Shown: positions 1 to 25,612 of the stretch, one piece after another | How positions within the stretch are numbered: position 1 is the stretch's first letter | Layout: every line of letters begins with the position of its first letter | DNA from: Macrostomum lignano | Lineage: Eukaryota | Direction: 5' to 3' | DNA: 27,605 nt | Assembly: GCA_002269645.1 (NCBI GenBank) | Contig: NIVC01002763.1 | Location: 1-27,605, forward strand | Notes under the pieces: model-generated | Databases searched by the model: none | What the model was told of the DNA's origin: nothing | What the model saw: only the letters and a program-made list of their open reading frames with translations | Program-made: the position numbers and the translations under genes

Positions 1-2954
1 CTTTTGTGTAGACTCTGAAATAGATGGAAATGGAATAGAATGATGGTCTTAACTTGACCTTCACTCTAGATAACCTTTCTGATATATTTAATTCAATTCA
101 ATTCTAGCAGTCATCTATGTTTGGAACTTGGAGTGGAGTGGAATGGAACTTGAAATTTGAAGTGACTATCTAGAGTTCACATTATGTCATCTGGACCCAC
201 TTTGACATAGTTTGTTTGGAGGGTGCATCTTTGCCAAATATTTTGTTGCATTTTACAAAAGATGTCAGCCTAGTTCTTTTGTTGTTTCCATAGTAACCAA
301 GTGATAGTACATTTTAAAAATTAACTTTTCTCCATGGTGGCTTAAGAGGGTGGTATGAAAGATATAGGATTTTCTATCTTATATTAAAGCTAGAAAGATT
401 TTTCATAGACATAACTGTCATGAGCCCTAGAGCCCTAGACTAAAATATCCAACTCAAATAAAGAAATAGGAAAGAAAAGTGTTGTCAGCAGATTTATGAC
501 ACAACCCTTGTACATGGTAAAAATGGAGCTTTACCCTCAATTAGGTACTTGTAATTAAAGTATTGTAAGGTTTATAGTATAGAATCTATAATATTTTAAC
601 AAATTAGCTTGTGGAACACTGCCTTTACTAAATTATACAGTGCATATAGTATACAAAATTAAAGTTCAGTTTTCATTCCATGTACAGGTAGGTAGGTCTG
701 AATATCATGACTGTCTGCGATAGGTAGAAAAATATATAAAAGTGTCAGTATCATAGTGATCTTTATATAAAATTCAGTTTAGTCATGAATTGTTAATCAC
801 TTTCATATTTTTATGAGCCAATCTTTATCTTGACACACAAAAAATATATAAGCCCATAAAAGTAAGACAATAATTAGGATTCAAAGGTGAAGATGAAGAT
901 CCAAAAGATCTGCCAATCATCTCTATTTTTGTATCTTTTTGGTAACTGTTCTAGCAGTTGCATTCATCTTTTGAATTTTGAATTTATTCTTTTCTGCCAA
1001 AAATAAACAAACATCAGTATATAAAGGATTAATGTTTTTAACCAAATGATAAGGAATTATTCTTTGTACTATTTATATTTTGTGCATAAGTCTTCTTTAC
1101 TGTAATCATTCAAGAGCTTGATCATGTAATAAAAATATTTGTGCTAGTATGTTCTGATTGTTTGCTCTCAACAAAATTGCCAAAAAGTGTGAAATGTGGG
1201 TAAATGTATTCTGAAATGTAGCACAAATGGATACTTTTGCTTGGGTCAATATTTTTTTGTTAAATGAATAAATTTGAGCAACCATTTTTTGTTTAAAAAC
1301 CTAGATTTTTAGCTTTCACACTGAACAAAAATGTCTAAAACCAGCCAAATAGCTGCTAATTTTTGACCTATCTGTAATATTTTGGTCTCAAGTTTAAGAA
1401 TTTATCATTGCACATATCTCCTTTGCACTGTCATGTTACAAAGTAATATCTACCATTCTAGCAACTGTATTTTATATTCCTGGGTTTTAAAATCACCCTA
1501 CCATTTAAGCCTAGACTACAAGGGCATTGAAAAGCAATGGCATATGCTTAACTAAGGTTGCTTTATAGAAACTGTTATGCTTTAGATATGGCATAGCCAA
1601 TATTAAAAATTTGGTAGCAAGCATAGTTGCTAAGGACCCTGTAGTGGGTAATTCTATAAGTAGCAGACATCTTCACAGAAAAATATCTCTAGATTATACT
1701 TGAATTAAGAGAGCTATTAAAATAGTTTTATAAGAAATATCTATACATAAAAAGTTTAATTATGATTCTAGATTGGTTTTTAATTGCCAAATAAAGGTTT
1801 TATAATGTTTTGCTAAAATTTGCTCACAATATAAGCAAAATTGGATGACTTTGACTAACTATTACTACTTATTACTTTTAGCATTTATCCTGAAACTTCA
1901 ACAATGGAACAATAAAGATCTTTCTATCAAATTTATTAAATATAAAATTATGCTAAAAAAACTAAAATTTCTAATTTTAATTATTGAAAAATTAGGAAAA
2001 TATCTATTACAACTGGAATGTTATAACTTGAATATTAAAAAATAAAATCTTAGTAAACATAGACTATCTACCTCCGAAAAATGACAATCTGCCTCTTTGA
2101 AACAAGTAATTAATTAAATATTTTAAATCTACAATGTTTTAAATTAATATACTTTATATATTTAATAATATAAAAGCAAAACTTTTGAAAATGTGTATCT
2201 ACTACTTTTCTATGGTTACAATGGGATCTTAATTAATCAAGCTATAGTTAATTTATATAGGAGCAAAATATTCCCATTTTCTAAATAAACTTTGATTTGC
2301 AGGGATAGATTTAGGAGGGGTGGCTACCTACATGTGATTACAAATTAGGTTAGCAAAATCATACTAAGCTCTTCAATGCACTTGTAAAACAAATGATATT
2401 GTGTATACTTTGAATAGTTGGTAAAAATTGTTTTCAAAATGCAAAGAGATACAAGCTTATATATAAAAAGGATGCATAATATAGTATAGTTTAGTACCAA
2501 GATGCACTTTTGAAATTATATAATATTTTTTAATAGCCTTTTGGTTATAGAATGTTTTAAATTGATTTATTAAACTAGTAATTGACTTGCTAGAAAGCAT
2601 ATATAATGACATTGCATAAAATATTTTGCTAAATAGAAGAAATATTATTTGTCAAATTTAATGGAATCCAATTTCTGCTTGTCACTAATTATTACAGTAT
2701 ATCTTGCAAACAGTTTTTTGTGTATTTTTTTTAGTATATAGATATATGTATCCAAAATTACAACTTAGGTTTTTCAACTTACCCAAAAATACAAAAACAG
2801 ACATTTCTCAATTTTTGTCAAAAAAGCTTTTATAAATCATTAAAAGAATATTAATTTTGTGATTTAACCTTGGTCTGCCACCTGAATTTAGTTGTTGTTT
2901 TGTTATAATTATACAACTTATTTGTATAATGACTGTTAGCTATCAAACAACAAT

Positions 2955-2974: not shown

Positions 2975-3027
2975 CCTTATTAAATTTGTTATAATAAAAA
3001 GTGTGAACTCTTGAATCATTGTTAATC

Positions 3028-3508
3028 ATGCCAGAAGTTGTGGTTCAACCACAAAAGCAGCAACAGCAGCAGCAGTACTGCTACTCAACTGAGCAGTACT
3101 TTCGACTGCCAGATAAATCATTGACCGCCAATCGGATAGTGATGCGCAATGAGCACTGCCTTGTTGCCTTCACTTCCGCTGGCTGTCTTCTGCGATTCGA
3201 ACGAAATCCAACGGTGGCTGATCAGAAACAGCCCAGCTGGAAGGAGGTGCTTCGACTGCCATTGATGAATTTTGATGCCTGTCTGTTGGCTGATTCTCAG
3301 GCTGCCGATGAGCGTCTGGTGGTGTGGCTCGCTGGGACACTGCGGGTCTACAATATTGACAGTCTGGAGTGCGGCAGCTTCAGCAGCGTCTGCGGATTGC
3401 CTGCTGGGGTTGCCGACGCTGCCTCTGGAGCTCGGGTGGCAAAGATATTGCAGATCTCTGCCGACGAAATGCTGCTAATGACTCGCTTGGCAACTGATGC
3501 AGTCTATG
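3028..3508 (+). CDS. kntc1: Rod/KNTC1 exon 1 (N-terminal propeller region, short polyQ)
   Basis: ATG at 3028 follows an in-frame TGA at 3004; ORF 3019..3558; donor TATG|gtgagg at 3509 (phase 1). Confidence 0.75.
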
Positions 3509-6500
3509 GTGAGGGCTGTGTGTGCATCATTACTTGGCTGGGCTGTCATCCTCCCTGATCCTCAGTAGCTGGGCCAGCCTCCCAAATCCTCAGTTGCTGG
3601 GCCAGCCTCCCAGATCCTCAGTTGCTGGGCCAGCCTCCCAGATCCCCAGTTGCTGGACCAGCCTCCCAGATCCCAGTTGCCGAGCCAGCCTCCCAGAACC
3701 CAACAGGTTGCTGGGCTGTTAGACTCAGAATTTGCAGTCACCAGTTCTCAATGCACTCTCAAGCAGCTCTCATTTGCCCCCTCTCTCTTTCTCCTCGCAT
3801 GGCAGACTGCTCGCTTCATCCGGTGTGCATCAGCCACCTCCGCCTGCCGCCGGAGTCCGCCTGGCCGGACAAGCCGCCGCTGATGGCCGCCACCCTGGCC
3901 TGTGTGGGCCTGCCGGTTCCTCCGAGCGACTGCTTCGACTGCAATACGACAGCCGTCAGGCCTGCCTGCACTGCCTGACGCCTGACGGTCGAGTTCTCAC
4001 CATCGACTGTCTGTCCGGTTGGCTAGTTGACTCTCTGGCAGTGCCTCGGGACACCACCGATCTGCTGCTAGTTCGCAGTCACGCAGAATCGTCAATATTA
4101 GCTCTGGCTAGTCCCAACAGCGTCACCCTAGTGGAATATCCATCCTGTAGACGTTTGCACCGATTGAGCTTGCCTAGTAAACTTGCCGATGCTCGCCTAC
4201 TGGCCTGTCGGTCAACTACTGTTAGTAGAATAATCCAACAGCCGGAATTATTTGTTTGGGGCGGCAACAGTTTAGTGTATCGGCTGCGAGAAACTTCGCC
4301 AGGTCAGCAGTATCAGAGATTGCTCGACTCGCTACAGTTTGATGAAGCTGAGCTGTGCGCTAAACGGTACGGACTGCCTATGGACCGGTTGTACTATGCC
4401 AAGTGCAGGCATCTGCTAGATTCAGACTCTTCTAGTGCGTCTTCTTCGACACCCGTGTCGGAGGAGTCCCTGGCTGAGCTGGTCAGCTGTTTGGATAAGC
4501 TGGCATTCTCTACTGATGTTGAATATTTGCTGTTGTTAAGCAGCTGTCTGAAAGGTGAGGGCTTGCTTTTTTATGAAATCTGACGTCATACTTTTTGTTG
4601 CCAGGCCTTTGTGATGGTTTTTTATTTTAATCCTTCAGTGTATTGTTTAACCCGAGTCCTTCACACATCCTTCAGTGGCCTGAGCTGCCACCCCTCCGAT
4701 CCTTCAGTGGCCTGAGCTGCCACCCCTCCGATCCTTCAGTGGCCTGAGCTGCCACCCCTCTGATCCTTCAGTGGCCTGAGCTGCCACCCCTCTGATCCTT
4801 CAGTGGCCTGAGCTGCCACCCCTCTGATCCTTCAGTGGCCTGAGCTGCCACCCCTCTGATCCTTCAGTGGCCTGAGCTGCCACCCCTCTGATCCTTCAGT
4901 GGCCTGAGCTGCCACCCCTCTGATCCTTCAGTGGCCTGAGCTGCCACCCCTCTGATCCTTCAGTGGCCTGAGCTGCCACCCCTCTGATCCTTCAGTGGCC
5001 TGAGCTGCCACCCCTCTGATCCTTCAATGGTCCTCAATAAAATCTACAAACAGCGCTAATTTACCTTTCTTCACCCCACTAACTCTCCCACAGCCGCCTG
5101 TAACGGGTCCAGTCCCGGCCTGCTCGAGCAGCTCCTAACAACGGTGTCGAATCAGCTGTGCCGCTATTTCTACGACCCATCTGTAGCGGTTGGCACCGAA
5201 GCAGCCGATCAGTCCATCCTAGCCCGCTGGTGCGAGACCAGCGATTTAGCCGCCGCAACATTGCAACGCCTACGCGTTTGCCTACAATTGATCGAGCCGG
5301 AACAATTCAGTTTAGAAATGTGGCAATGGTTTCAAACTGTTAATATTTGTTCGTATTTTTGCGACTCTGTACTGCGCAATAATCAAGAGGAATCGGCTGT
5401 ACTGTTTGCTAATTATAAGCAGACCATCTGCAGACAATTGGCAGATAGCGGAGAATATCTACAGCTGGTGCTGGACAATCTGCGCTGCTGTCAACCGGAT
5501 GGATTGCTGTCACAGCCTTGGTGCGTCTGGCTGGCTGAGGAGTTCCTGCCGGCTATGGCCGCCTCGCCTGAGTCTGCGAGGTTTGCTCCCATAGTAAGTT
5601 GATCGAGTTATGACAGCTTGCTGTTACCGGCTTGGGAGCTAGAATAGATAGAGTGGATTGGAGTGTTAGATGGAAAGAATTGGAGTGCTAGATAGATAGG
5701 ATTGGAGTGCTAGATTGAGTGGATTGGAGTGCTAGATAGAAAGGATTTGAGTGCTAAATAGAGAGGATTAGACTTCTAGATAGGGAGAATCAGCAGTGCT
5801 AGATAAAGAGAATCAGGAGTGCTAGATAGTGAGAATCGGGAGTGCTCGATAGGGAGGATCAGGAGTGCTAGACATGGAGGATCAGGAGTGCTAGATAGTG
5901 AGAATAAGGAGTGCTAGATAGTGAGAATCGGGAGTGCTCGATAGGGAGGATCAGGAGTGCTAGACATGGAGGATCAGGAGTGCTAGATAGTGAGAATAAG
6001 GAGTGCTAGATAGTGAGAATCAGGAGTGCTAGATAGGAAGGATCAAGAGTGCTAGACATGGAGAATCAGGAGTGCTAAATATGGAGGATCAAGAGTGCAA
6101 GACATGGAGAATCAGGAGTGCTAAATATGGAGGATCAAGAGTGCTAGACATGGAGAATCAGGAGTGCTAGATATGGAGGATCAGGAGTGCTAAATAGTGA
6201 GAATCAGGAGTGCTAAATATGGAGGATCAGGAGTGCTAGAAATGGAGGATCAGGAGCGCTAGATAAGGAGGATCAGGAGCGCTAGATAAGGAGGATCAGG
6301 AGTGCTAGATATGGAGGATCAGGAGCGCTAGATAAGGAGGATCAGGAGTGCTAGATATGGAGGATCAGGAGTGCTAGATAGGGAGGAACAGGAGTGCTAG
6401 ACATGGAGAATCAGCAGCGCTAGATAAGGAGGATCAGGAGTGCTAGATATGGAGGATCAGGAGTGCTAGATAGGGAGGAACAGGAGTGCTAGACATGGAG

Positions 6501-9500
6501 GATCAGGAGTGCTAGATAGGGAGGAACAGGAGTGCTAGACATGGAGGATCAGGAGTGCTAGATAGGGAGGAACAGGAGTGCTAGACATGGAGGATCAGGA
6601 GTGCTAGATAGGGAGGAACAGGAGTGCTAGACATGGAGGATCAGGAGTGCTAGATAGAGAGAATTAGGAATGCACCTGTACATTCGCTACTCTAATCTCA
6701 CAGATCGCTGATTGGCTAGAGGACTGCATAGACGGCCTGATCCGATTGGACGACTCCGCGGCCACCAAAGCGGACGCCTGCCGCCAGTTCTTAGCCAATC
6801 TGCTGCGCTGCGTTGGCCAACCAACTGAAGAAGCCGGGGACTCGTTTAGCCGCCCCCTGAGCCAGTTAGCTAGGGCTTTAGACGAGCTGGTGTGCCTGTG
6901 CTCCAGGTATAAACTGCGTCTGAGCGTTCGCCTCTACCGGCGTATGGATAAAGGGGATTTGGCCAAGCATATCCTGGATTACATTCTGCTTAGTCAGGAT
7001 GCCGGCCTGTTTGGCCTGTTTGGAGCTTATTTGCAGGTGAGCCTCGCTGAAATGACCCCTGGTTCGATTCCGTGCGCAGCCACAATTTTCATTTTGGGGT
7101 TTTGCTCGTGCTCAGGAGCGCAAGTATCTGTACTATAAAAATACGAATTTCCTCCCGCAGGAGTGCGGCCTTAATAGCGACCAATTCTATTGCGACTATT
7201 GTTCAGCCAGGCTGCAGGCAGCCAGTGCTGCAACAGACGCGGCTATGCATATGATTGGCTCCAATAATGATGCAGCCAATCATCTGCATGGCAGCGACAG
7301 CCACGGCAGCGGTGTGAGTCCTCAGGATGCTGAGAGGACCGCTGTCACCGTACTCGGTCGAATAGTTAACGAAGACGCCAGGATGCGTTGTACTATTATG
7401 CTAGCCGAGCAGGCGACTGTGCCGTGGTCAGAGGAGGTGCAAGCAGTTGTTGAGCAGCATCTGGCTTTGAGGCATCGGCCTGATCGGGTAGTGCTGCAGC
7501 GGGCTGTAACGGCGGCTAAGACTCAGGCGCTGTTTAAACGGTAAGGCTGACTGGGGGTCTAGAGGTAGAGAAATGGGGTGTTGGCTGGGGTTAGCGGCTC
7601 ATTGGGAGTGGTCTGTAGGGAGAGAAATGGGGTGGTGGCTGGGGTTAGCGGTTCACTGTGGGTCTGGAGGGAGAGAAATGGGGTGGTGGCTGGGGTTAGT
7701 GGCTCATTGGGGGTGGTCTGTAGGGAGAGAAATGGGGTGGTGGCTGGGGTTAGTGGCTCATTGGGGGTGGTCTGTAGGGAGAGAAATGGGTGTCTCATTA
7801 GGGGTCTGGGGGGAGAGAAATGGGTGTTGGCTGGGGTTAGAGGCTCACTGTGGGTCTGGAGGGAGAGAAATGGGGTGGTGGCTGGGGTTAGTGGCTCATT
7901 GGGAGTGGTCTGTAGGGAGAGAAATGGGGTGGTGGCTGGGGTTAGCGGTTCACTGTGGGTCTGTAGGGAGAGAAATGGGGTGGTGGCTGGGGTTAGTGGC
8001 TCATTGGGGGTGGTCTGTAGGGAGAGAAATGGGGTGGTGGCTGGGGTTAGTGGCTCATTGGGAGTGGTCTGTAGGGAGAGAAATGGGGTGGTGGCTGGGG
8101 TTAGCGGTTCACTGTGGGTCTGTAGGGAGAGAAATGGGGTGGTGGCTGGGGTTAGTGGGTCATTGGGGGTGGTCTGTAGGGAGAGAAATGGGGTGGTGGC
8201 TGGGTTTAGTGGCTCATTGGGGGTGGTCTGTAGGGAGAGAAATGGGGTGGTGGCTGGGGTTAGCGGTTCACTGTGGGTCTGTAGGGAGAGAAATGGGGTG
8301 GTGGCTGGGGTTAGTGGCTCATTGGGGGTGGTCTGTAGGGAGAGAAATGGGGTGGTGGCTGGGGTTAGCGGTTCACTGTGGGTCTGTAGGGAGAGAAATG
8401 GGGTGGTGGCTGGGGTTAGTGGCTCATTGGGGGTGGTCTGTAGGGAGAGAAATGGGGTGGTGGCTGGGTTTAGTGGCTCATTGGGGGTGGTCTGTAGGGA
8501 GAGAAATGGGGTGGTGGCTGGGGTTAGCGGTTCACTGTGGGTCTGTAGGGAGAGAAATGGGGTGGTGGCTGGGGTTAGTGGCTCATTGGGGGTGGTCTGT
8601 AGGGAGAGAAATGGGGTGGTGGCTGGGTTTAGTGGCTCATTGGGGGTGGTCTGTAGGGAGAGAAATGGGGTTGTGGCTGGGGTTAGTGGCTCATTGGGAG
8701 TGGTCTGTAGGGAGAGAAATGGGGTGGTGGCTGGGGTTAGTGGCTCATCATACATGCGCAACCTCCAAATTTCGGTCGGCCATGCGACTTAGTTTTAACA
8801 AAAATGCGACTTAGTTTTTGGCCAAAAATGCGACTTACATGTAAAAAAACCCGAAAGCAAAATTAACGCAACTTTGGGTAAACGGCAGGAGTAACTATGA
8901 CTGTCTTATAAAGCCAAAATGCCTCGTCAGCTACTTAGTACTACTACTCTGTGTTTTTTCGGGTTGGCATTTTTGCGACTTCCTTGGTTGGCCGCCAAAT
9001 CGGTCGGCCGGATCGGCCGACTCGGCCGACTGTTGCGCATGTATGTGGCTCATTGGGGGTGGTCTGTAGGGAGAGAAATGGGGTGGTGGCTGGGGTTAGC
9101 GGTTCACTGTGGGTCTGTAGGGAGAGAAATGGGTGTTGGCTGGCGTTAGAGGCTCACTGTGGGTCTGGAGGGAGAGAAATGGGGTGTTGGCTGGGGTTAG
9201 AGGCTCACTGTGGGTCTGTAGGGAGAGAAATGGGTGTTGGCTGGCGTTAGAGGCTCACTGTGGGTCTTGAGGGAGAGAAATGGGGTGTTGGCTGGGGTTA
9301 GAGGCTCACTGTGGGTCTGGAGGGAGAGAAATGGGGTGGTGGCTGGGGTTAGTGGCTCATTAAGGGTCTGTTGGGAGAGAAATAGTGTGGTGGCTGGGGT
9401 TAGCAGCTCAGCGGTTTAGTAGGCCCAGGGGTCTGGGGAGTGAGGTGGCGTTAGCTGCTCACTAAATGGCCTCGAGAAACAAGAGACTCGTGTAATTGCT

Positions 9501-12500
9501 TACTGAAAAAAGGGTATAAATGAATGTATAGTGACAGGCCCAAGCCACAAATAAAAATAGAAAAGAGAATTTCTTATCTGTTTTGTATTATCAATTTGTT
9601 CGACTGCTTTTCAACAGTGAGACACCCACCATTTAAAACCCCTAAAACATTTAACAGCTACAATATCAGGCAGCACGACGCCAGCCAGCAGGACGCCCAA
9701 GCTAGGGCAGCTTTAAAAGGCCTATTCTCACAGCTGGCCAGCGGCCGAGTTACTCCGGCCACTGTCCGAGCCGATCTGCTACTATTAACGGACACGTTTG
9801 GATTTACAGTCTCGGATTTAATGACCGTGGCCGTTGATTGCGCTTTGAAAGAGGGTAGTTCCGTTAAGTGAGTAGTTGTGTTTGTCTGTTTTAATTAGTA
9901 TGATTACGTAATTAACGTAAGGGAAAAATTATAGAACAAGGCATTCGGAGTATTTAATTACAGGTTTATAGTTACTCTCGTCGCTAACCTGAGCAGCCCT
10001 TTAATCTTTTGTGTCTTTAGCTCGTATAATTAGAACTAAAGAAATTGTAGAGCTGGTACCGCTAGATGTAAAATAGTTCTAATTAGATGACGAGGCGCTT
10101 AGTTATAATTGCTCTTACTGTTTACCCTTGCGGTGTGCTGTGAGGCATTGAAAGCGAATATCGCATTTCAATAATCGGTCGGTTTGGGTGCCCAGCCCAA
10201 GCGCTATACCGTAGTACCAACAGTTGTTGTGACGTTCTGCTTATTCTATATTAATACTGACAGGCGTTATGACGCTCTGGCAAGAAGGAACTCTAGCCCT
10301 GCCTAGCAAGCTTCCCGGAAATAAAAGATTAACTCAAAGCAGGCAAACTCAAAGTGGCCGAGTAACGGACGCTTCTTATATTTAAATACTCAAGTTGAAC
10401 TCAATCACAGAACTCAAATCGGTGATGGTTGGCTAATAGGTCCTGACTGTCGACTAATACTAATAGTCGACGTCTGGTGTCTGCTCTTCTCTGACCCGTT
10501 CTCTGGGTTTTACTTAATCTAAATCTACAAATCGCTATGACCGATGTCTGTTTGACAAACAAAAAGGGCGAGATGCGAGAGAAAAAGGGCGCACAACAAT
10601 AAATAGCAAACTCAGGCCTGGGGCAGGGGGATAGACTGCCCGATCGGCTAAGCCGACGAGAACAGAACACGCACTGGCCAGCCAATCAAACCCCGCCTGG
10701 GGGAGAGGGTGCAGCACGCACAAAGCCCCGCGGCCAGCCAAACCTTGACCTGGCTCACGTCAACTCCAAGCTAGCACAAAAGTGCATCGCGCCGTGCCAA
10801 AAAGACAAAGGCAAGTGCACTACAATTTCATAGTGCACGTTGTAGATGATTCGTCGGTCTTGTCCCAGCTGACCAGGACTTTGCCACTAACCAAGTAATC
10901 AAGTTTCCTCTTTACTGTGTTAACAGTACCCTGTTCCTCGGCTTTCCTTTTCGGAACGACGTTGCCGTTTACCAGGTCGTAGAAAATTGTCAGCACCGAT
11001 CAGAAGGGAGACTGGCTTATTGGCATCGCGGAGATCAAACGGATTGGCAAGATTAAAAGGGTGAATTTCTGAATGTGCGTCCAACATCACTGATGTTTGA
11101 GGTTTGCAGATCCAAGAAGTCGTGTAGCCTTTCAAAGAAACATAATTTCCGTCCTGGGAACCCGTTCTCAGAATGTGGCATCATACGATGTTCGATGTAG
11201 ATTCGCTGCATCTTGTTCCAAAAGTGTTGCCACGCAGCACTTTACTTGCCTGTGTTGTAAAGCTCAACTGGCTGCTCATGTCCCGTCTGATGTAGGTTTT
11301 ATTAATGGCGGTATCTAATAACTCGTAGATCAACACTCCCCAGTCAAAACGATGCCGTTGCCTTGACGTCGTTAACACATCGAAAATAACGTCGCCAAAT
11401 AAGCCATTTTGTCGCACGCGGTGACGTTGCTATAACGACCCCAGGCAACGTTAGAATTTCACGTTACTGATGACCAAACGGCGACCATTCATTACAGATT
11501 GCATATACTAAGCACAGATGCTTAGCACTTTCAATATACCGAGAATCTCAAAACTATAATTCAATAAGTTTGTTCTAAGATAGGGAATAAAAATAAACTA
11601 AGTTTAAAACGTTATTTTGCTCTGGTTTTACAGAATATCTTAATAAATTACACTTTCTGACATAAATATTGTGAATTTACGAATGCATTTTAAAGAGCGC
11701 AGATATTTTACTGGCTGTGAAAAAAGTACAAGAAAAAACAAACTCGTCCCACATTTTGATATTGATGAAGAAGATCTGGTTTTTGGAGTCATTATCGTTG
11801 CACTGTTACAGGTACAGTTTGAAGAAGCAGGGGCTTTCTGATGTCCGGGCGGAGCGCTTCAAAAGCGCATGACTTCATAAGACCTAAATCTATGTCTAAA
11901 ACCGTAAAATACAGTCGCCTAAATTTCACATCGCATTTCATTTTACATAGATAGATAGATTCCAGGTATGGAAATGTTACCGCAACCTGCAACTATCGAA
12001 AAGGTCTAAAACATTATTCTAAATTAGTATTAAAGCTAACATTATGCGTTTAAAATATATACACTATAGCTGCAAGTATAAAACAAATCAGTGACGATAC
12101 AAGAGGCTTTATTTGCACTTCATCATGTAACTTCGCTCTAGAAATTTGATTTTCACTATCAATCACTCAGTTCTAAAATACTTTTATTTAAATTAAAAAT
12201 AAGACATTTAAGCAACAGAATAACAGAACCGTCTGTTCTCTCACGCATACTTCAGTCTCCACGTAGTAAAAACGAAAGGAATTTAATAGTTTTTTGGACC
12301 CTCGCAACTATCTCTGGATTCGGTCAATCACTAAATTAGCTGAGAGTTATAAGAAAACGTTAAATAATAATTTTGTCAGTCTGTCTAAGCAGATAAATAG
12401 GCTGGTTGACCAAAGCAGGCTGCCTCCCGATTAGTGAAGGCAGGAAACTGAAAGCCAAACTTGACAGGCCGCCTTACTTTGGCCTGTACGCAAAAGCTCG

Positions 12501-15500
12501 CAGGACTGCTGATTTCAGGCATTTACTATCTTTTGGATATTTTTTGTAGCAAACGGATTGGCAAATTTTTCAGCAGCCTTTGTATGTCTGCAGCACGAAT
12601 GGAGCAGACCCTCTAAGTTGGTGACGCGTACAGTGCCAGAACAAAATCCCACATGTTGGGATGCGCAGTCGTTATAAAGCTTCTCACGCGGCTATGAAAG
12701 CCCTCCTCTTTGCTGTTCGTCCACTCCTGGCAGTTAAAGACTGATATAATGTCGAAACCGACCTCGATCCAGTAGATTCGTAAATATGCAAATACGAGTA
12801 GGTTGAATAGGTTTGAATAGATTGATAGTTTGAATAGTTTGATAGAAATGTCATTGTCTTTCTTAGGGAGACTGCGGTATTAACAATATGGAAGCATAGA
12901 CAGTTTACCAGATGTCCGAAAAGATTATATTGACAATAAAATTTTACGTAAAGTAGCATTAAACAACATAAAAATTAGAAAGATAAGATTGAAATTAAAC
13001 AAAGTTACCACCTCGATACACTTGTCATGTCAAGGAAACTGACTTCAGTAGTCCATGAGGAGCTGACGGCGAGTTTACTGTTGGAATTGATAGAATTCAG
13101 GTGTCGAACAAATTCAGTCAGTTTCAGCCGGGTGGTCCCAGTGAATAAAGATGTCATCTATGCACCTGAAGTAGATGTCCGGGTTATAAAAGGAAGTTCT
13201 CAGTTCAGTTTTCTCCCAAAGGCTGCATGGCTGGGTGCAAATTAATATGCGACTCATGACTGTGCCTTTAAGTTGTAAGAAAATTGTTATCAAATTCAAA
13301 GTCTTCTGTACAAGCATAGTTACTGTAGCTTTATTATCTCAGCATACGGTCTAGTCGGGTCAAGATATCGGATAAAGAATACCTGTATTGCTGCAATGCC
13401 CTGGTCTATGGAGATCATGGAGTATAGACTCTGGATATCACAGGTTGCCAGAGTCCATCCTTCTTATCCAATTTATCCATAAGGTGTGCTTTGAAGTCAT
13501 ATGAGTCCTTAATGAAAGTGGGTTGAGCTTGGGCAATCGGATTAAGAAAAAAATCAATGCATTTTTCTGCCAGTGGCTTCAGAACTACATCGGCTAACAT
13601 AAGGTCTGTCTGCTAGGACCCGGAAATCACATCACATCACAGAATCACAAGATCAGAGTTCTTGTGAGTTTTTGGTAGCAGGTAGAAATGCCCGGGGCGA
13701 AGATAAGAGAACTGTTTGTTTGATATAAACTTTTTGCTACATAAAATGAGAAAGTTCCACCTGATAATTTCCGCAGTCTCGGGTTTCGACGGCTGGTCCA
13801 GCTTTTGATAGGCATTAGTGTCAAGCAATTGGTCGTACGCTGCAAGGTTGCATGATGACTACTGCGTTTCCTTTGTCCGCCTTTTATATTAGGACGGAGC
13901 TGTTTCGCTCCTGAATCGCTCTTGTCTCTGGTGCTAGCGGGCTAACTAACCCTCTTCAGCTCTCCAAAGAACAAGCTCAAGTGGATTCATAAAAATTTAA
14001 AGAGAACCGAAGAATAGTACGCACATAGCCACAAACTGTTCAGATGTAGCGTTATTGTATTTAATCGAAAAGTATCTAAGCTTAGTACCGGCTAATAGCG
14101 GTCTAGGCGCATAAAACAGTCATTGAAAAGCGCATGAGCATGGCTGACTGATATCAAGCGGTCAGAAACGCAGTCAAGTGCAAAGTCGTTGAGCCAAGTC
14201 AAGTTAATCCAATACAGTAGGCTGAAAGTAATGATATGCAAAAAAGGCATGCGATCAGTCATTAGAAAAATATAATTCACACACTCCTGCGGCAACCTAG
14301 ATCGCAGTCGGTGGACACACTTCTCAGCACTAGCCAACGCCAGCGAGCCGTCGCAGCAACCTGCGTGCAGTGCGTCGAGCATGCGCGCAGCGTTGAATTC
14401 GAAGTAAAGCAGACCCTGCTTCATTAAGCTTGTGGCATAAGCTGCGTAGTTGCTGCTCATATAAGACATCAAGGCAGTAACCAGCTCAGCATCGACGTAC
14501 TTTGTCGCAGGCAGGCCTGGAAAGCTAACGTCAGTCCGGTTTTAATACCGTGCACTTGGCGGTACCACGTCCAAGCCATTCATTACTAACAGGTGTCATT
14601 GCGGTCAGCAGTGTTACACGCTCACCATCGTTGTAGGTGCGCCAGTAAGCCATCAGGCAACCCCAGACAATACCACAGATGTGGCGGGGCATCCCATGGC
14701 GGTACAGCACTTGCGCGCTCATTTGGTACGCTCTGTATCTTGTAGCATGGTCGAGGAGCACGGCGCCTTGTAACTGTCGCAAAACGAACGTTGACACAGC
14801 ACGGAGTGGGTAGAGTACAGTACGCATATGAGTTCACCGACGCCGCGACCTGACAACTGCTTAGAATCACGCAGCTCGAAGCCCCTCACTTCCGCGTGCT
14901 GTACAAAGCGACGTTCCAGCAGCGGCTGAAAGTAGTGACCCATACGTCGTCACCTTGCTGGATACGCTTCATCAACTGTGAATTAAATCCGGCGTATTGG
15001 CACACAACGATCATCGCGGTATCAAAGTAGACAACATTTAAGATAATATTGTGATAGTTAATGCTACGTTGACCAGACGGCATTTCTTGCGTGACGCGTA
15101 TCAGCTGTTGAAAGCGACGACACCTCATATACTGATCCAGCATAGCGCGGCTGGCCTACTAAAGGGGCTTTGACACGTCTTGACTAAAGCTCAGATTGCG
15201 CATGACACAACCCAATTGCTTGACGAAATACACTGCTGATGAGCTGCAAAAGCACGGGGTAGATTATTAGATTAACCAGGCAGGACATGCAGTCGATTAA
15301 ATCGTAGAGTCAGGAGAGCGAGAGAGAGTGAGAGAGCAGAAGAATATCAATATTTTTATAATACACTGTAGATGTAAATTCCAGTCTAGTTCCGATCCGA
15401 TGCGCTGAGGTTCAAAGCACGGCTTGTTCTTTGACTGTTAGTGAGTCATTTTCACTGTTAGGACGCCTTGCACTAAAATTTCACTATTAGGGCCTGTATA

Positions 15501-18500
15501 ATATATGGGCCGGCTGATGATATATTTCTCAAGAACTCCGAGTCACTAGGCGATTCTCTACGTGTGATATTGCATATATGCGTTGTATCATTGGCTGGCT
15601 CATTTGTTTATATGGCAAGGTGAGAAGAAATCTTGTAATTAGGCAAGCTCACTATGGACTACAAGTCACTAACAAATACAGGATCTTGGTTTGAAATCAG
15701 AAATCATACCTTGCAAAAGTTCCCATCAAGTAAGTTTAATATACAAGTAGGAAGCACACTACCAACATACCTAAAAATTTAGAGTCAAGTGCACTAGACA
15801 TGGCATACTCTAGCTCATGGGCTATAGAGACGTGGATAACATTCAATCAAATTTGAGTACATTAGCAAAGCCATGCAAGCCAAACCTGTGCTAAACCAAC
15901 CAACAAAAAAACTTTTATATTCATGTTTTGCATTCTTTACTCGTACATTGTCCAACTAATTGAAATCGGCTACCAGTGGTTTAACTTACCTTGATCCACT
16001 CGATGCAAAATCAATACAAATAATTATGCACTATTGCGAGTAATGGAATGAAGAGCACTTGTAGAACGGAGAATAGCTCGGCAGATTTTTTCAGATACGT
16101 GCGTAGTAAAGCATTATCATTTAAGGCTGATTTTATTTTCGCCTCAAGAGGGCTTCAGGACATGTGTGCAGGAGGCTAAGTGTCGTAGGGGGGGGACAAG
16201 AAAGTGTACATCTTAAAGCTTAAAGTGCGCCAGGATGCACGCAGCCCCCCCTCCCCTGACCTCTAGCTAAAACAAATTTACCTATGACACAATACCAGAT
16301 GCCGAGACCTACTGGCCTGTCCATTGCGCGATCTGGGCATCACTGTTAGCCTTCAGGATCGTCTGCAAGCCGCTCTGCGCTGCGTTCAACGCGCCCACAT
16401 CGGCCTACAATTATATAATCCAGCCTACGTATCTGCTAACGAGGCCGACTTTCTACTCGATCTTGGTTGCCTAGCAACGGACGCATATTTTTCCCAGCTA
16501 GCCGAGGCCGGCTCCGATCCCGGTCCAGCCGGCCTCGAATCCGCCGTCGTAGCTCGAATCGGTCGAACTATTCGGTTAATGCGATTTACCTGGCGAGCTG
16601 CTCGGTTGCTAGGCAACACTGTGCCAGATTATGAGCGCCTAATTGACAACGGAGACGCCGCGGCGGTCGCTTATTTGGCTAAGCTGCACGGCTTGCCAAG
16701 CTCTGATTGGCTGCGCCAGCTGGCTAGTCTTCTGCTTCTAGTAGATAACAAAAATTTGGGGATCTCCGGCTCAACGGACACGCCTAAGCTTCTGCCATTG
16801 TTAGTGCCGGCACTGCTCACTGTTGATGGACTGTCGGTGTGGCGGGTCGCTCAGCTGCTTCTGGATGCTGGGCTGGTGAGTCATGGAGTGAAATATCGGA
16901 TTTCTAGCTTTATGATTCATAATATATTGGGATCCTGGATTTTTTAAACTATATTTGTAATTGAAATTAAGGTTAATGATTCATAACTGGGATATGAGAA
17001 TTCAAGGTTTTTTAATAACAGTTTGTGTCTATGATTTCAAGATTTCTGATTCATAATTGGGACCTGGGGGATTTCAATATTTATGATTCATATAATTGGG
17101 ATCTGGGGGGATTTCAAGATTTATGATTCATATAATTGGGATCTGGGGGGATTTCAGATTTATGATTCATAATTGGGATCATAAAGTAGCGCATATATAT
17201 TAAGACAGAGTTTTGATTTTTATATGTAGATTGCTCTTTTATTGCAATTTACAATACAAACTCAGCCCAATACAATACAAATACAAACTCCAATCCCTTT
17301 CGCTTGCAGTCGGAACTGGCCGCCCGACAAAACTTGGACGCTTTGCTCAAAGCGGCCCGAGTCTCACTGCTCGAACTTGACGATGACAGCGATATTGACA
17401 GTATCTCCGATTCTAATAGCGACATTAGCAGCGGCCTGTCCGCTCTAGGCGAGTTGCTAACCATCGCTTGCCGACTCGGAGGATTCGGTTCCGCCTTGTC
17501 GCTTCATCGCTTGCACACCTGTCTGCGTATTATTCAATCCTGCCGCTGTTGCTGCTGTCTGGCCGAGTCTGGCGCAGTGAACTCAAGCGATTCAGCTGCC
17601 CAGCTAGGCATGGCACTGGAGGTTCGCTATGAGGATTCCGCAATAATGTCGCTGCCGTCTACTCAGAGATTGATGTTTCTCAAATTGACTGGCCAGATGA
17701 TGCGGCTGACTGAACGAGCGTCGGATGCTGCGCCTGCGGTTGCGATCGATCAGGTGAGAGGAGTCGTTATTGCGATTGTTAAGTTACTGTCTTCCAGTTG
17801 TTCCTACCGATCACGAAATTCTTGCTTCGTTCTTTCTTTCTTTTATTCCTCCTTTTCTAGAAATCCCATATTCTCCTTTCCAGGCAATTAGACTTGATTC
17901 TCGTTTCATGGAAATCCCTCTCTCGTTTCTTTGAAACCCCACTTGCCCTTTGTTTCCTCGAAATCCCACTTGCCCTTCGTTTCCTGGAAATCCCTCTCTC
18001 GTTTCTTTGAAACCCCACTTGCCCTTTGTTTCCTCGAAATCCCACTTGCCCTTCGTTTCCTGAAAATCCCTCTCTCGTTTTCCTTGAAATCCCACTTGCC
18101 CTTCGTTTCCTGGAAATCCCACTTGCCCTTCGTTTCCTAGAAATCCCTCTCTCGTTTTCCTTGAAATCCCACTTGCCCTTCGTTTCCTGGAAATCCCACT
18201 TGCCCTTCGTTTCCTGGAAATCCCTCTCTCGTTTTCCTTGAAATCCCACTTGCCCTTCGTTTCCTGGAAATCCCTCTCTCGTTTTCCTTGAAATCCCACT
18301 TGCCCTTCGTTTCCTGAAAATCCCTCACTCGTTTCCTTGAAATCCCACTTGCCCTTCGTTTCCTGAAAATCCCTCACTCGTTTCCTTGAAATCCCACTTG
18401 CCCTTCGTTTCCTGAAAATCCCTCACTCGTTTCCTTGAAATCCCACTTGCCCTTCGTTTCCTGAAAATCCCTCACTCGTTTCCTTGAAATCCCACTTGCC

Positions 18501-21500
18501 CTTCGTTTCCTGAAAATCCCTCACTCGTTTCCTTGAAATCCCACTTGCCCTTCGTTTCCTGGAAATAATACTTACCCCTCATTTACTTACCGGAAAACCC
18601 ACTTACCCATCGATTCCTGGAAATCTCACTGGACTCTCGTTTCCTGGAAATCCCAAATGCCTCTCGTTTCATGGAAATCCCAAATGCCCCTCGTTTCCTG
18701 GAAATCCCACTTACCCCTCGTTTCCGGGAAATCACACTTTTATTTCTCCGAAAATGCAACTTCTTCCTTTTCTATTAATACCATTTATTTTCCTTTCCTG
18801 AAAAATCACATGGTTTTGTAATCCTTTAATCACCTAGACGCCCAGCAACGCGACCCTAATCAACCTGGCTAGTCAGGCCATCGACACTCTTCGACTAGCT
18901 GGCCGCCCCTTAGCCGCCCTCACCCTGGCAACTCTGCTAAGCGAATTACAAGACAATACGGACTCATTAGGTGCCGCGGACAGTTTGCCGTCAATCTGCC
19001 AGGACCGCTGTCATGCGCTACTAACTGGACTGTTATCTCAGCGTCTGGAAGCGAAACTAATCGACAAACAGCTGTGCCAGTCCGCCGCCTGGTCTCTGCC
19101 GGAATCCGTTGGCCAGTCCGTTCTACGACGGGTCGCGCAGAAATCTCGGCACTCATACAATCGATTGGAGTTCATCGCTCGCCTAGCCTATCACTATGGT
19201 GCTCAGCGGGGCAATCCTGAGCACGCTAAACGGGCACTGGCACTGGCTAAGGGAGCCTATTGGAGTAGGACTCTGTCCGCTTTGGGTATTAAGATTGGCG
19301 ACTTGACGGTGAGGAATCTAACTATCCTTAGATCCCATCAATTTATCCCATCCCAGATCCCATCAATTTATCCCATCCCAGATCCCATCAATTTATCCCA
19401 TCCCAGATCCCATCAACTTATATCATCCCCAGATCCCAAAAATGTACGCCATCCTAAGTTCTCTTAATCCGTTGTCTCTACAGATTCGAGAATCCTAGCT
19501 ACAACAACAGCTGGAACCTTTATTAGATTGCACTTCACTTATGAAAATATTTCCCAGATCCTACAGTATACACTTTTTGCAAAGCGATATTCACCCTTAC
19601 TATATCTGTCTGCTAATATCGCAAATATTGATTAGGCACCTGGCAAAGCGGCTGAATGCGCCGAGACTCTGTGCAGTCTACCTGTGTCTAAATCGCTGCA
19701 GCCTGATTTACTGCTATACTACTGTCAGCAGTATCAGCAGCCCGCTGCCGCTCACCTGCTGCGCTACCTCGAAAATCTATTGTTTCCGCAGTCTGGCAGT
19801 CAGGTGTGTTCTTGGCGCTTTTAATGCGCTTTTGCTTTTCTAAATGTGGGTTGTCACCTTCCTAGATTGTCAGTTACTGGGCCAGTCTCATCCTCAGTTG
19901 CTGGGCCAGCCTCATCCTCAGTAGCTGGGCCAGCCTCCCAGATCCTCAGTTAGTCGCTGGGCGAGTCTCCCAGATCCTTAGTTGCTGGGCCAGCCTCCCA
20001 GATCCTCAGTCAGTTGCTGGGCCAGCCTCCCAGATCCTCAGTTGCTGGGCCAGCCTCCCAGATCCTCAGTCAGTTGCTGGGCCAGCCTCCCAGATCCTCA
20101 GTCAGTTGCTGGGCAAGCCTCCCAGATCCTCAGTTGCTGGGCCAGCCTTCCAGATACTCAGTCAGTTGCTGGGCCAGCCTCCCAGATTCTCAGTCAGTTG
20201 CTGGGCCAGCCTCCCAGATTCTCAGTCAGTTGCTGGGCCAGCCTCCCAGATTCTCAGTCAGTTGCTGGGCCAGCCTCCCAGATTCTCAGTCAGTTGCTGG
20301 GCCAGCCTCCCAGATTCTCAGTCAGTTGCTGGGCCAGCCTCCCAGATTCTCAGTCAGTTGCTGGGCCAGTTCCCTCATCATCCCCATATCTGACTGGTGC
20401 CGCACACGCAGGTGGAGGTCAGCCAAGGTGCCGTGAACCTGGCCGGCGCCACCCTTGCCGTACTGAAGCGGGTGAGCCATCCGGACGAGCTGCTCAACCG
20501 TCTACTCGGCTACTACGCTCAGTTAGATCCGTACGAATACGAGTCTATCGAGCTGATCTGCTGCAGCCTGCTAGCGATGCCGCAGTGCCCCGAGGCCCAG
20601 GCTGCTCATTGTAGCAGAGCTCTGCAGTTGCTCGCTTCGTTGAAGCGCTACAGACGAGTGTCTCAGATTAGCAGCTACGAGAGGAACTGGTGAGGACTTG
20701 TCAATTCTGACTGCGTGACGCTGTGACACCTCCAATTCTGAATGCGTGACGCTTTTGATTCTGAATGTTCGACGCCTCTGATTCTGAATGTGTGACGCCT
20801 CTAATTCTGAATGCATGACGCTTCTGATTCTAAATGCGTGACGCTTCTGATTCTGAATGTGTGACGCCTCTGATTCTGAATGCGTGACGCTGTTGTGTCT
20901 TTAATTCTGAATGCGTGACGCTTCTGATTCTGAATGCGTGACGCCTTCGATTCTGAATGCGTGTGACGCCTCCGATTCCGAATGCGTGACGCATCCGATT
21001 CTGAATGCGTGACGCATCCGATTCTGAATGCGTGACGCTGTGACACCTTCAATTCTGAATGCGTGACGCTTCTACTTTTGAATGCGTGACGCCTCCGATT
21101 CTGATCACGTGATGCTGTGACGCCTCTAATTCTGAATGCGTGACGCCTCTGAATCTGAATGGTGACACCTGTAATTCTGTACTTATAATGAGTGTGTCTG
21201 GTGTCCTGGCTCAGATTAACGCGTTGCTACATTAATTTTATAAACTTATTTACGCTCTGTGCCCTTGTTTACGCTCTGTTGCATATCCGCATTGAAACCG
21301 CAGGTACCAGAAGCGAATGCAGCGGCCAGACCTGGCCGAATGGTACTTCACCTCAGCGTCCGCCATCAATTCGAAGTCGTCGCGTCGTTTAAATTTATTC
21401 GCCCTACTGGAGCCCAAGCTGTACAAAATTGTGAATCCAGAATTAAGATTCGACACTCTGGACTATTGGCTGGGCGTGTCCGATCTCATTGGCATATCCG

Positions 21501-24500
21501 AGACCGAGCTTAAACTTTCCGCCGCTGATAAGATATTCGAGGAAGCGTTCGGTCACTCGCATCTGCAGCACCAGCAGCAGCAACAGCACGAGGCTAAAGT
21601 TAATAATTGGGCCGCCCAACCCGACTTAGCCAGTCAGATGGCTGTGGCAAGGATGGAAAAGGTTTGCTGTTGTGTCACTCGCTTAGGGTTTGTTGTGTCA
21701 CTCGTTTAGGGTGTGTTGTGTCACTCGCTTAGGGTGTGTTGTGTCACTCGCTTAGGGTGTGTTGTGTCACTCGTTTAGGGTGTGTTGTGTCACTCGCTTA
21801 GGGTGTGTTGTGTCACTCGCTTAGGGTGTGTTGTGTCACTCGCTTAGGGTGTGTTGTGTCACTCGTTTAGGGTGTGTTGTGTCACTCGCTTAGGGTGTGT
21901 TGTGTCACTCGCTTAGGGTGTGTTGTGTCACTCGCTTAGGGTGTGTTGTGTCACTCTTTTAAGGTGTGTTGTGTCACTCGTTTAGGGTGTGTTGTGTCAC
22001 TCGTTTAGGGTGTGTTGTGTCACTCGTTTAGGGTGTGTTGTGTCACTCTTTTAAGGTACAGTGTTGTGTCACTCGCTTAGGGTGTGTTGTGTCACTCGTT
22101 TAGGGTGTGTTGTGTCACTCTTTTAAGGTATGTTGTGTCACCCGTTCAGGGTGTGTTGTGTCATTCGTTTAAGGTGTGTCACTGCGCTGTCACTGTATGG
22201 TGTCACTGATATGTCAATGGTGTCACTCAATGGTGTCACTGATATGATCAATGGTGTCACTGGTATGATCAATGGTGTCACTGATATGATCAATGGTGTC
22301 ACTGGTATGATCAATGGTGTCACTGGTATGATCAATAGTGTCACTGGTATGATCAATGGTGTCACTGATATGATCAATGCTGTCACTGGTATTATCAATA
22401 GTGTCACTGGTATGATCAATGGTGTCACTGATATGATCAATGGTGTCACTGGTATTATCAATAGTGTCACTGGTATGATCAATAGTGTCACTGGTATGAT
22501 CAATGGTGTCACTGATATGATCAATGCTGTCACTGGTATTATCAATAGTGTCACTGGTATGATCAATGGTGTCACTGATATGATCAATGGTGTCACTGGT
22601 ATTATCAATAGTGTCACTGGTATTATCAATAGTGTCACTGGTATGATCAATGGTGTCACTGGTATGATCAATGGTGTCACTGGTATTATCAATAGTGTCA
22701 CTGGTATGATCAATGGTGTCACTGGTATTATCAATAGTGTCACTGGTATGATCAATGGTGTCACTGATATGATCAATGCAACTAGTGTCACTGGTATGAT
22801 CAATGGTGTCACTGGTATGATCAATAGTGTCACTGGTATGATCAATGGTGTCACTGATATGATCAATGCTGTCACTGGTATTATTAGTGTCACTGGTATG
22901 ATCAATGTGTCACTGATATGATCAATGATCAATAGTGTGTATGATCAATATCACTGGTATGATCAATGGTGTCTGGATAATGCTGTCATCAATAGTGTCA
23001 CTGGTATGATCAATGGTGTCACTGATATGATCAATGGTGTCACTGGTATTATCAATAGTGTCACTGGTATTATCAATAGTGTCACTGGTATGATCAATGG
23101 TGTCACTGGTATGATCAATGGTGTCACTGGTATTATCAATAGTGTCACTGGTATGATCAATGGTGTCACTGGTATTATCAATAGTGTCACTGGTATGATC
23201 AATGGTGTCACTGATATGATCACCTCGCTCCCGTACAGGTGCTAACTAGCGTATACGATTCGGAGCGAGCTTTGCACGTGGCATTCGCCATGCTGAAGCG
23301 AACTAGCTTGGGCTGGTTGAAGCTGCGCATTACCCGAATCTGCCTGGCAGTTTGCCAAGCCTGGTCTGAGACTGAAACTACCGCTGCGCCGCCGCAGCCG
23401 CCTGCGACACTTCAACAGCAGAAACTAACCGGCGGTGCCGCGCAACAGTCGATTCATCGGGCCGAAGCTTCGTTGAAACGCTATCGCGACATTCTAGAAG
23501 CTCTTGAATGCGAGCAGGCACTACACGCCAACGGATTAAGCGACTGCTCAGATTTGGCTAAGCTGTGCTCAAGTCCTAGCGAACTGCTCAATCGACTGGT
23601 CTCGGCCGGTGAAGCCGAGGCTGCCAGTCAGGTGGCCGAGATTTTGGGCGCAGATCTGTCAGCTGTGGTTGCTAAGCGCGTGCAAGATTGGCTAGGCATT
23701 AAGCCGGCTGGATCGGGGGCCGATGGCTCGCCTGGTGAGTTGGCTGGGAGGGGCTTCTGATTAATGATGTTTGATTTTTTGTTAGATAGGTATCAGATAG
23801 TACTATCGCAGCATTAGGGTTATCGAATCATTCCCATTAGCTACCTAAGGATCACTCCTACTTGCTCCCTAGGGATCACTCCTACTCGCTCCCTAGGGAT
23901 CACTACTATTAGCTACCTAAGGATCACTACTATTAGCTACCTAAGGATCACTCCTATTAGCTCCCTAAGAATCACTCCTATTAGCTACCTAAGGATCATT
24001 ACTATTGGCTACCTAAGGATCACTACTATTAGCTACCTAAGGATCACTACTATTAGCTACTTAAGGATCACTACTATTAGCTACCTAAGGATCACTCCTA
24101 TTAGCTACCTAAGGATCATTACTATTAGCTACCTAAGGATCATTACTATTGGCTACCTAAGGATCACTACTATTAGCTACTTAAGGATCACTACTATTAG
24201 CTACCTAAGGATCACTACTATTAGCTACCTAAGGATCACTACTATTAGCTACCTAAGGATCACTACTATTAGCTACCTAAGGATCATTACTATTAGCTAC
24301 CTAAGGATCACTACTATTAGCTACCTAAGGATCACTACTATTAGCTACCTAAGGATCACTACTATTAGCTACCTAAGGATCATTACTATTAGCTACCTAA
24401 GGATCACTACTATTAGCTACCTAAGGATCATTACTATTAGCTACCTAAGGATCACTACTATTAGCTACCTAAGGATCATTACTATTAGCTACCTAAGGAT

Positions 24501-25484
24501 CACTACTATTAGCTACCTAAGGATCACTACTATTAGCTACCTAAGGATCACTACTATTAGCTACCTAAGGATCACTACTATTAGCTACCTAAGGATCACT
24601 ACTATTAGCTACCTAAGGATCATTCCTATTAGCTACCTAAGAATCACTCCTATTAGCTACCTAAGAATCACTCCTATTAGTATTAGCTCCCTAAGGATCA
24701 CTCCTACTCGCTCCCTAAGGATCACTCCTACTCGCTCCCTAAGGATCACTCCTACTCGCTCCCTAAGGATCACTCCTACTCGCTCCCTATGGATCACTCC
24801 TACTCGCTCCCTAAGGATCACTCCTACTCGCTCCCTAAGGATCACTCCTACTCGCTCCCTTTAGGGATCACTCCTATTAGCTCCCTATAGATCACTTCTA
24901 TTAGCTCCCTAAGGATCACTCCTATTAGGATCCTATTAGCATTAATTTTAGATCAATTGCATCTTTAGATAAAGTCTCATAGCTTTCATTGAAATCTCTC
25001 TGCTTGTAGGCAGCGATTCGCAGCAGAGCCAATCAATGCTGGACCTGAGCGCCGACGCTCTGCTATCAGTCAACGTCTGCGACATGATGTCCCAGATGCA
25101 GCAGCAACAGCGCGATGAACTCGACCAACTGCTGGACGATGAGCAGCGCTTGGCCGACACGGCCGACTTGATTGTTCGCCTCGTGCAGCGCAGCGACGAT
25201 CGAGCTCGTTCTGCCTGTCTGGCCACCGTCAGGGACGCTTGGGACTCGGAGGATTGGCGGCCTAGCGGCGTGTTCCTCGCCTGCGCCAGGGTGCTGCACC
25301 GCCTGGAGGCAGACTCCAGACTGGCCGACGCCTGGCATATGAGGATCTGCGAACTGCAGGTAAGGGGTTTTTAATAATAGGGCTGCTTGCGCCTGTCCCG
25401 TCCGTCCTGCTGTGTCTGTCTGTCTGTCTGTCTGTCTGTGTCTGTCTGTCTGTCTTAGTGTCTGTCTATCTGTCTGTCTGTCTA

Positions 25485-25563
<79 letters not shown>

Positions 25564-25578
25564 TAGTGTCTTAGTGTC

Positions 25579-25612
<34 letters not shown>

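Follow-up and report, generated by a model that had tools for sequence, protein, structure and literature searches.

A decayed toti-like polymerase fragment, very probably an endogenous viral element, lies antisense in a KNTC1/Rod intron of the flatworm Macrostomum lignano

How does part of the polymerase gene of a double-stranded RNA (dsRNA) virus come to lie inside a gene of a flatworm? The question is raised by contig NIVC01002763.1 of the Macrostomum lignano assembly GCA_002269645.1, of which positions 1 to 27,605 were analysed as one window. The original prediction, made by a model from the letters and a list of open reading frames (ORFs), had joined four short minus-strand ORFs at 14092–15330, with about three frameshifts, into one reading that resembled the RNA-dependent RNA polymerase (RdRp) of totiviruses, and had placed it in an intron of a kinetochore gene. 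All motif strings that it quoted from the window were found in minus-strand ORFs within 14092–15330 and in the stated order. We found that the stretch is very probably a non-retroviral endogenous viral element (EVE), a DNA copy, approximately 1 kb long, of an internal RdRp part of a toti-like dsRNA virus, located in an intron of the M. lignano gene KNTC1/Rod.

All tests were run on the unaltered pieces, on single frames in which stops were written as X, or with full-length relatives compared with the raw DNA. A phmmer search with one unrepaired in-frame piece of 125 aa against 1.84 billion cluster representatives yielded 63 proteins at E ≤ 1e-3, the best of them at E 3.5e-11 and 40% identity. 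Nearly all these proteins were approximately 950–1050 aa long and were aligned near residues 500–620. The Pfam family RdRP_4 (PF02123) was detected in all eight of the matches tested, with E from 1e-35 to 1e-49, and the aligned residues lay inside this domain. A 984-position profile built from 38 full-length relatives was compared with the 1355 stop-to-stop pieces that the whole window contains; it matched four pieces only, all of them on the minus strand, collinear and within the viral fragment (Table 1). The tblastn search with the 63 relatives against the whole window gave significant matches that were likewise all on the minus strand, collinear, distributed over three frames and confined to 14242–15245; the sum E for relative P0001 was 3.5e-22. 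Palm motifs B, C, D, and E followed one another in canonical order across profile positions 502–686, and the GDD of motif C was present in the reading. Homology to these relatives supports the derivation of the fragment from an RdRp of the RdRP_4 kind (toti-like; Ghabrivirales in the broad sense). The totivirus-like call made earlier agrees with the presence of PF02123 in the tested relatives and with the toti-like character of the named ones.

The same motifs could in principle be due to chance, to a retroelement reverse transcriptase or to a pentatricopeptide-repeat (PPR) pseudogene. The silence of Pfam RdRP_4 on the pieces fits such a reading, as does a PDB search that matched a designer PLS-type PPR protein at E 4e-4. 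This PPR match, obtained with the motif B–C piece (14886–15143, minus-strand translation), proved to be an artefact of repeat summation, composed of three matches of one query stretch with 6.5–6.7 bits each and individual E of 81–97, and no Pfam PPR model matched the pieces. A reverse transcriptase was rejected as well: no Pfam reverse transcriptase family matched the fragment, and the eight tested phmmer matches were all RdRP_4 with zero reverse transcriptases, so the refutation that the original prediction had named, a better match to a retroelement, did not occur. Moreover, the four profile-matched pieces were collinear. Chance, reverse transcriptase, and PPR readings are excluded by the phmmer, tblastn, and profile results together with Pfam on the relatives, and we assign to them a probability of practically nil.

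The fragment corresponds approximately to residues 500–790 of a polymerase of about 980 aa, that is, to palm motifs B–E and part of the thumb, or approximately 29% of the gene. There were three frame changes between the four collinear pieces, which means at least three frameshifts and agrees with the number given in the original prediction. At least two adjacent in-frame stops lie inside the virus-derived reading, because approximately 50 of the 63 phmmer alignments cross them. Profile positions 1–500 and 790–984 had no match anywhere in the window. The fragment is thus cut at both ends, without motif A, the N-terminal half, and the C-terminal fifth. The interval first proposed, 14092–15330, contains the fragment but overshoots it by approximately 150 bases on one side and by 85 on the other, and these margins carry no detectable similarity. 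Among the 42 near-invariant columns (the same residue in 90% or more of the 38 relatives), 26 were retained and 16 were lost; in the motif B–C piece, 14 of 23 were retained. The fragment is a dead derivative of an RdRP_4 member, without an open frame able to encode the enzyme, and its decay pattern looks neutral. Since the reading is broken and many invariant residues are lost, it most likely has no present function.

The host gene around the fragment was KNTC1/Rod on the plus strand, with Pfam domains in the expected order on both sides: ARM_KNTC1_1st on exon ORFs before the fragment, ARM_KNTC1_3rd and, weakly, Rod_C on exon ORFs after it (Table 1). The placement in a kinetochore gene, made in the original prediction, is supported by these domains. 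The product of the ORF at 3732–4580 shared 99% identity with A0A1I8HMC6 (UniRef), a protein of M. lignano, which makes this flatworm or a species very near to it the host. Between the exon ORFs that flank the fragment (9871 to 16324), no plus-strand ORF of at least 110 aa was found, and the ORFs present there were all short and had no family match in Pfam. A donor GTGAGT is located at approximately 9868, and the acceptor lies just before or within the start of the next exon ORF. As there is no plus-strand coding sequence from 9871 to 16324 and a donor stands at its beginning, the viral fragment is intronic, and it sits antisense in a KNTC1/Rod intron of approximately 6.4 kb. A comparison of the flanking exons with solved KNTC1 structures, made as a check for a missed exon, gave no KNTC1 match, and an Rfam scan of the whole window gave no match. 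The fragment had a GC content of 51% and a CpG observed/expected ratio of 1.09; for the immediate flanks, these values were 40–42% and 0.60–0.66. Elsewhere in the same intron, at 10500–10900, we observed a local GC peak of up to 61% with a strong AT skew; short minus-strand ORFs without family match lie in its vicinity, and it may be the remnant of another repeat or element.

Table 1. Positions of the viral fragment, the profile-matched pieces, the host exon ORFs and intron, and the neighbouring retroelement-like reading. Positions are those of the window unless profile positions are given; strand is relative to the contig.
Feature	Position	Strand	Basis and remarks
Toti-like RdRp fragment (EVE, very probably)	14242..15245	-	phmmer, tblastn, relatives' profile; approximately 1 kb
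Profile-matched piece 1	profile positions 502-587	-	E 4e-23
Profile-matched piece 2	profile positions 590-618	-	E 1e-3
Profile-matched piece 3	profile positions 622-686	-	E 6e-11
Profile-matched piece 4	profile positions 718-789	-	E 0.06
Exon ORF	3732-4580	+	Pfam ARM_KNTC1_1st, E 8.8e-8
Exon ORF	5144-5599	+	Pfam ARM_KNTC1_1st, E 2.5e-5
ORF with last host exon before intron	9524..9871	+	between ARM_KNTC1_1st and ARM_KNTC1_3rd exon ORFs
KNTC1/Rod intron with fragment	9868..16323 (bounds approximate)	+	approximately 6.4 kb; gap between exon ORFs
Retroelement-like reading, decayed	13000..13950	-	directly 3' of viral fragment; seen in frame translations
ORF with first host exon after intron	16324..16947	+	207 aa, GC 53%; assigned to KNTC1 by position
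Exon ORF	18985-19464	+	Pfam ARM_KNTC1_3rd, E 4.3e-12
Exon ORF	23239-23757	+	Pfam Rod_C (weak), E 0.005

The sequence of an exogenous virus, a food organism or a symbiont might also have been joined wrongly to host DNA during assembly. We found nothing positive for such an artefact or contamination. Against it, a dsRNA virus that replicates lacks a DNA stage through which it could enter a DNA assembly, and it would not have three frameshifts, in-frame stops, and a truncated polymerase. In addition, the window is gap-free, with zero N, and exons of one host gene flank the fragment in the same contig. The chance of an artefact is slim in our estimation. Virus-derived sequence is contiguous with host sequence on both sides, and its disabling breaks and truncation are incompatible with a replicating virus; in this the claim of endogeny in the original prediction was borne out. 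We regard the viral origin, position, orientation, and decay of the fragment as established. In the genome of M. lignano, the fragment is presumably either fixed or still segregating.

Several results weigh against the identification as an endogenous element or against parts of it. PF02123 did not match any single frame or stop-to-stop piece directly, even at E ≤ 10; the pieces scanned with Pfam were short (76–149 aa) and decayed. The direct match that the original prediction had offered as a check thus failed on the pieces as they stand, and homology was shown through the relatives. At the ends of the fragment, no target-site duplication, inverted or terminal repeat or poly(A) tract was found beyond chance-level short matches. 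The retroelement-like reading next to the fragment was unsupported by Pfam, the word-indexed protein search, and PDB. Exact-protein look-ups of three window ORFs, made for independent assemblies, found none on record. The copy count covers the window. As to other null results, Pfam on frames and pieces gave sub-threshold noise only (Phage_tudor, DUF2990, TTC3_9th). The motif B–C piece gave zero candidates in a word-indexed search of 5.8 billion proteins, and no relative was found with it in a scan of IMG/VR.

Since dsRNA viruses do not pass through a DNA stage, a DNA copy of one requires a reverse transcriptase supplied by the cell. For elements of this kind, the enzymes of retroelements are usually proposed as the route (PMC4231630 section 10; PMC2805616). 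For the fragment in KNTC1/Rod, the reverse transcriptase of a host retroelement would have copied viral plus-strand RNA to DNA within a germ-lineage cell, probably through a template switch, and the cDNA would then have been joined into the chromosome. The germ lineage of flatworms includes pluripotent neoblasts. The minus-strand reading directly 3' of the fragment could be the partner in such a switch, as a viral piece followed by a 5'-truncated retroelement is the order expected from it. This reading may belong to a 5'-truncated Penelope-like reverse transcriptase, which it resembles at the level of motifs only. The retroelement call has no database support, and therefore the mechanism of integration stays a matter of inference.

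The same neighbour bears on another possible history, in which a retroelement captured the viral piece once and spread it, so that the KNTC1 copy arrived by transposition and is one of several. Besides the retroelement-like reading directly 3' and on the same strand, this history is favoured by the absence of plus-strand coding sequence from the intron, whose short ORFs can be taken as repeat debris, and by the abundance of repeats in KNTC1 introns. It is opposed by the absence of a second copy within the window, by the fact that none of 15 billion predicted proteins exceeds 45% identity, by the lack of confirmation for the retroelement identity of 13000–13950 in Pfam and the protein search, and by the absence of terminal repeats or duplications around the fragment and the retroelement-like reading taken as a pair. 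We consider passage in a transposable element unlikely, and direct endogenization of a viral RNA copy remains our preferred explanation.

As an endogenous element, the fragment most likely has no protein role now and would drift as neutral intron DNA; at most, KNTC1 pre-mRNA would include it as an RNA segment antisense to the virus. Such antisense RNA might feed a piRNA or siRNA defence (PIWI-interacting or small interfering RNA) against related viruses, which would give the fragment a non-coding function. Its orientation, antisense to a gene that may be expected to be active in dividing cells, would suit this role, and EVE-derived piRNAs are known in arthropods. On the other side, an amino-acid identity of approximately 40% to any known virus would defeat base-pairing with those viruses, and the decay pattern looks neutral. 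A small-RNA function is decidedly improbable on this evidence, and neutral decay of an endogenous element is the account that we prefer.

The named matches were the RdRp of Totiviridae sp. (QXV86394.1), Murri virus, Hubei toti-like virus 9, Lotchka virus, and Mute swan feces associated toti-like virus 2; more distant ones were Persimmon latent virus, Thrips tabaci associated dsRNA virus 1, and Scaphoideus titanus toti-like virus 1. Their sources label the named relatives as 'toti-like' or unclassified. Over the 86 best-conserved columns, the fragment was 37–44% identical to its nearest relatives, and the mutual median of the relatives was 51%. In a neighbour-joining tree of these 86 columns, which come from one in-frame piece, its terminal branch was 0.82 compared to a median of 0.30, and P0002, its nearest neighbour, had a bootstrap support of only 33% (200 replicates). 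The tree should be taken as no more than indicative, because very distant pairs triggered a numerical warning in its computation. Judged from this alignment, the fragment appears to be an outlier on a long branch among its relatives. The original prediction had supposed a virus not described before; this is plausible at 37–44% identity to the nearest known viruses, but the divergence is inseparable from the decay of the integrated copy.

The contig of P0002 (L001; Logan SRR19115558, 6719 nt) carries a small ORF of 62 aa (ORF-s), an ORF1 of 822 aa, and a non-overlapping RdRp ORF of 924 aa. The literature was also searched with the run and protein accessions of the nearest relatives for their hosts, with no result. 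The ORF-s and ORF1 of this contig and of a second one, L002, were searched against the whole window for capsid sequence; ORF1 gave a best E of 0.76, and the matches were scattered. ORF1 of the two relatives thus matches nothing in the window, as the original prediction, which had detected no capsid, would lead one to expect.

Exogenous toti-like viruses associated with invertebrates (QXV86394.1, Murri virus, Hubei toti-like virus 9, Lotchka virus, and L001) resemble the fragment over the polymerase region between motif B and the thumb, where their motifs also follow in the same order. They also explain the glutamine before GDD, which had been read earlier as a hint of giardiavirus-like lineages: the three invertebrate toti-like relatives that were read share it with the fragment, and no giardiavirus link is needed. 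The toti-like relatives differ from the fragment in having complete open polymerase genes of 920–1070 aa on RNA-derived contigs of approximately 3–8 kb, whereas the fragment is a broken 29% piece in host DNA. Both relatives' contigs that were inspected, L001 and L002, carry a large upstream ORF, whereas the fragment has no capsid in the window.

Toti-like EVEs are documented in arthropods, for example in the isopod Armadillidium vulgare (PMC4231630), and totivirus-derived genes in fungi (PMC2805616). The fragment is of the same kind, as these are also RdRp or capsid fragments in nuclear DNA with stops and frameshifts and without clear target-site duplications. It differs from the arthropod and fungal elements in its host phylum, Platyhelminthes, and in its location inside an intron of an identified essential gene. 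Its viral lineage is not the IMNV/Artivirus-like group reported for the isopod.

Toti-like dsRNA viruses tied to free-living flatworms are known from another source as well. Tricladiviruses (SmedTV and relatives) are toti-like dsRNA viruses of planarian flatworms, are reported not to be integrated in Schmidtea mediterranea assemblies, and have an arthropod-associated sister clade with genomes of 6.6–7.0 kb, three ORFs, and non-overlapping capsid and RdRp ORFs (bioRxiv 10.1101/551184). The layout of L001 is as described for this arthropod clade. No tricladivirus was among the 30 phmmer matches whose names were looked up. In a survey of flatworm viruses, the viral sequences were not found in the available flatworm genomes (PMC9241645). 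Our literature search found no report tying M. lignano to a toti-like EVE, and toti-like viruses of flatworms were described there only as exogenous. The fragment is a new member of the established toti-like EVEs, and its host phylum is new as far as the literature searched shows.

With this locus, toti-like dsRNA viruses gain a host record, datable in principle, in a laboratory model species, a basal free-living flatworm. The record suggests that flatworms are, or once were, among the hosts of a virus group that has been sampled mostly in arthropod material. The locus does not change the understanding of how such elements arise. It is also a concrete place at which to ask whether small-RNA pathways of flatworms use viral fossils. 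For virus discovery in Macrostomum transcriptomes it calls for caution, since unspliced KNTC1 transcripts will contain RdRp-like sequence. In the boldest reading, the fragment would record that a toti-like lineage, known otherwise from arthropod-associated samples alone, once infected the germ lineage or neoblasts of Macrostomum, and it would serve as a source of antisense small RNA against a relative that still circulates. Its antisense position within an intron of a gene for cell division would lead to its transcription in precisely those dividing cells from which the germline is made. We hold this combination to be very improbable; if true, it would be a flatworm case of EVE-based heritable antiviral memory.

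The first 3000 positions of the window, upstream of the first KNTC1 exon ORFs, were very AT-rich (GC 24–31%), and 3001–5500 was exon-rich with GC 52–58% (1-kb windows). The KNTC1 introns at 3550–9410 and 17033–24928 were packed with minisatellites with a period of 21–54 and up to approximately 48 copies, for example at 5682–6673, 7556–8748, 17901–18739, 21668–23222, and 23836–24928. These minisatellites give rise to long spurious ORFs, of up to 413 aa, on either strand. A (TGTC)n microsatellite of approximately 51 copies at 25413–25612, in or beside the last exon ORFs, yields artificial ORFs rich in leucine, serine, valine, and cysteine.

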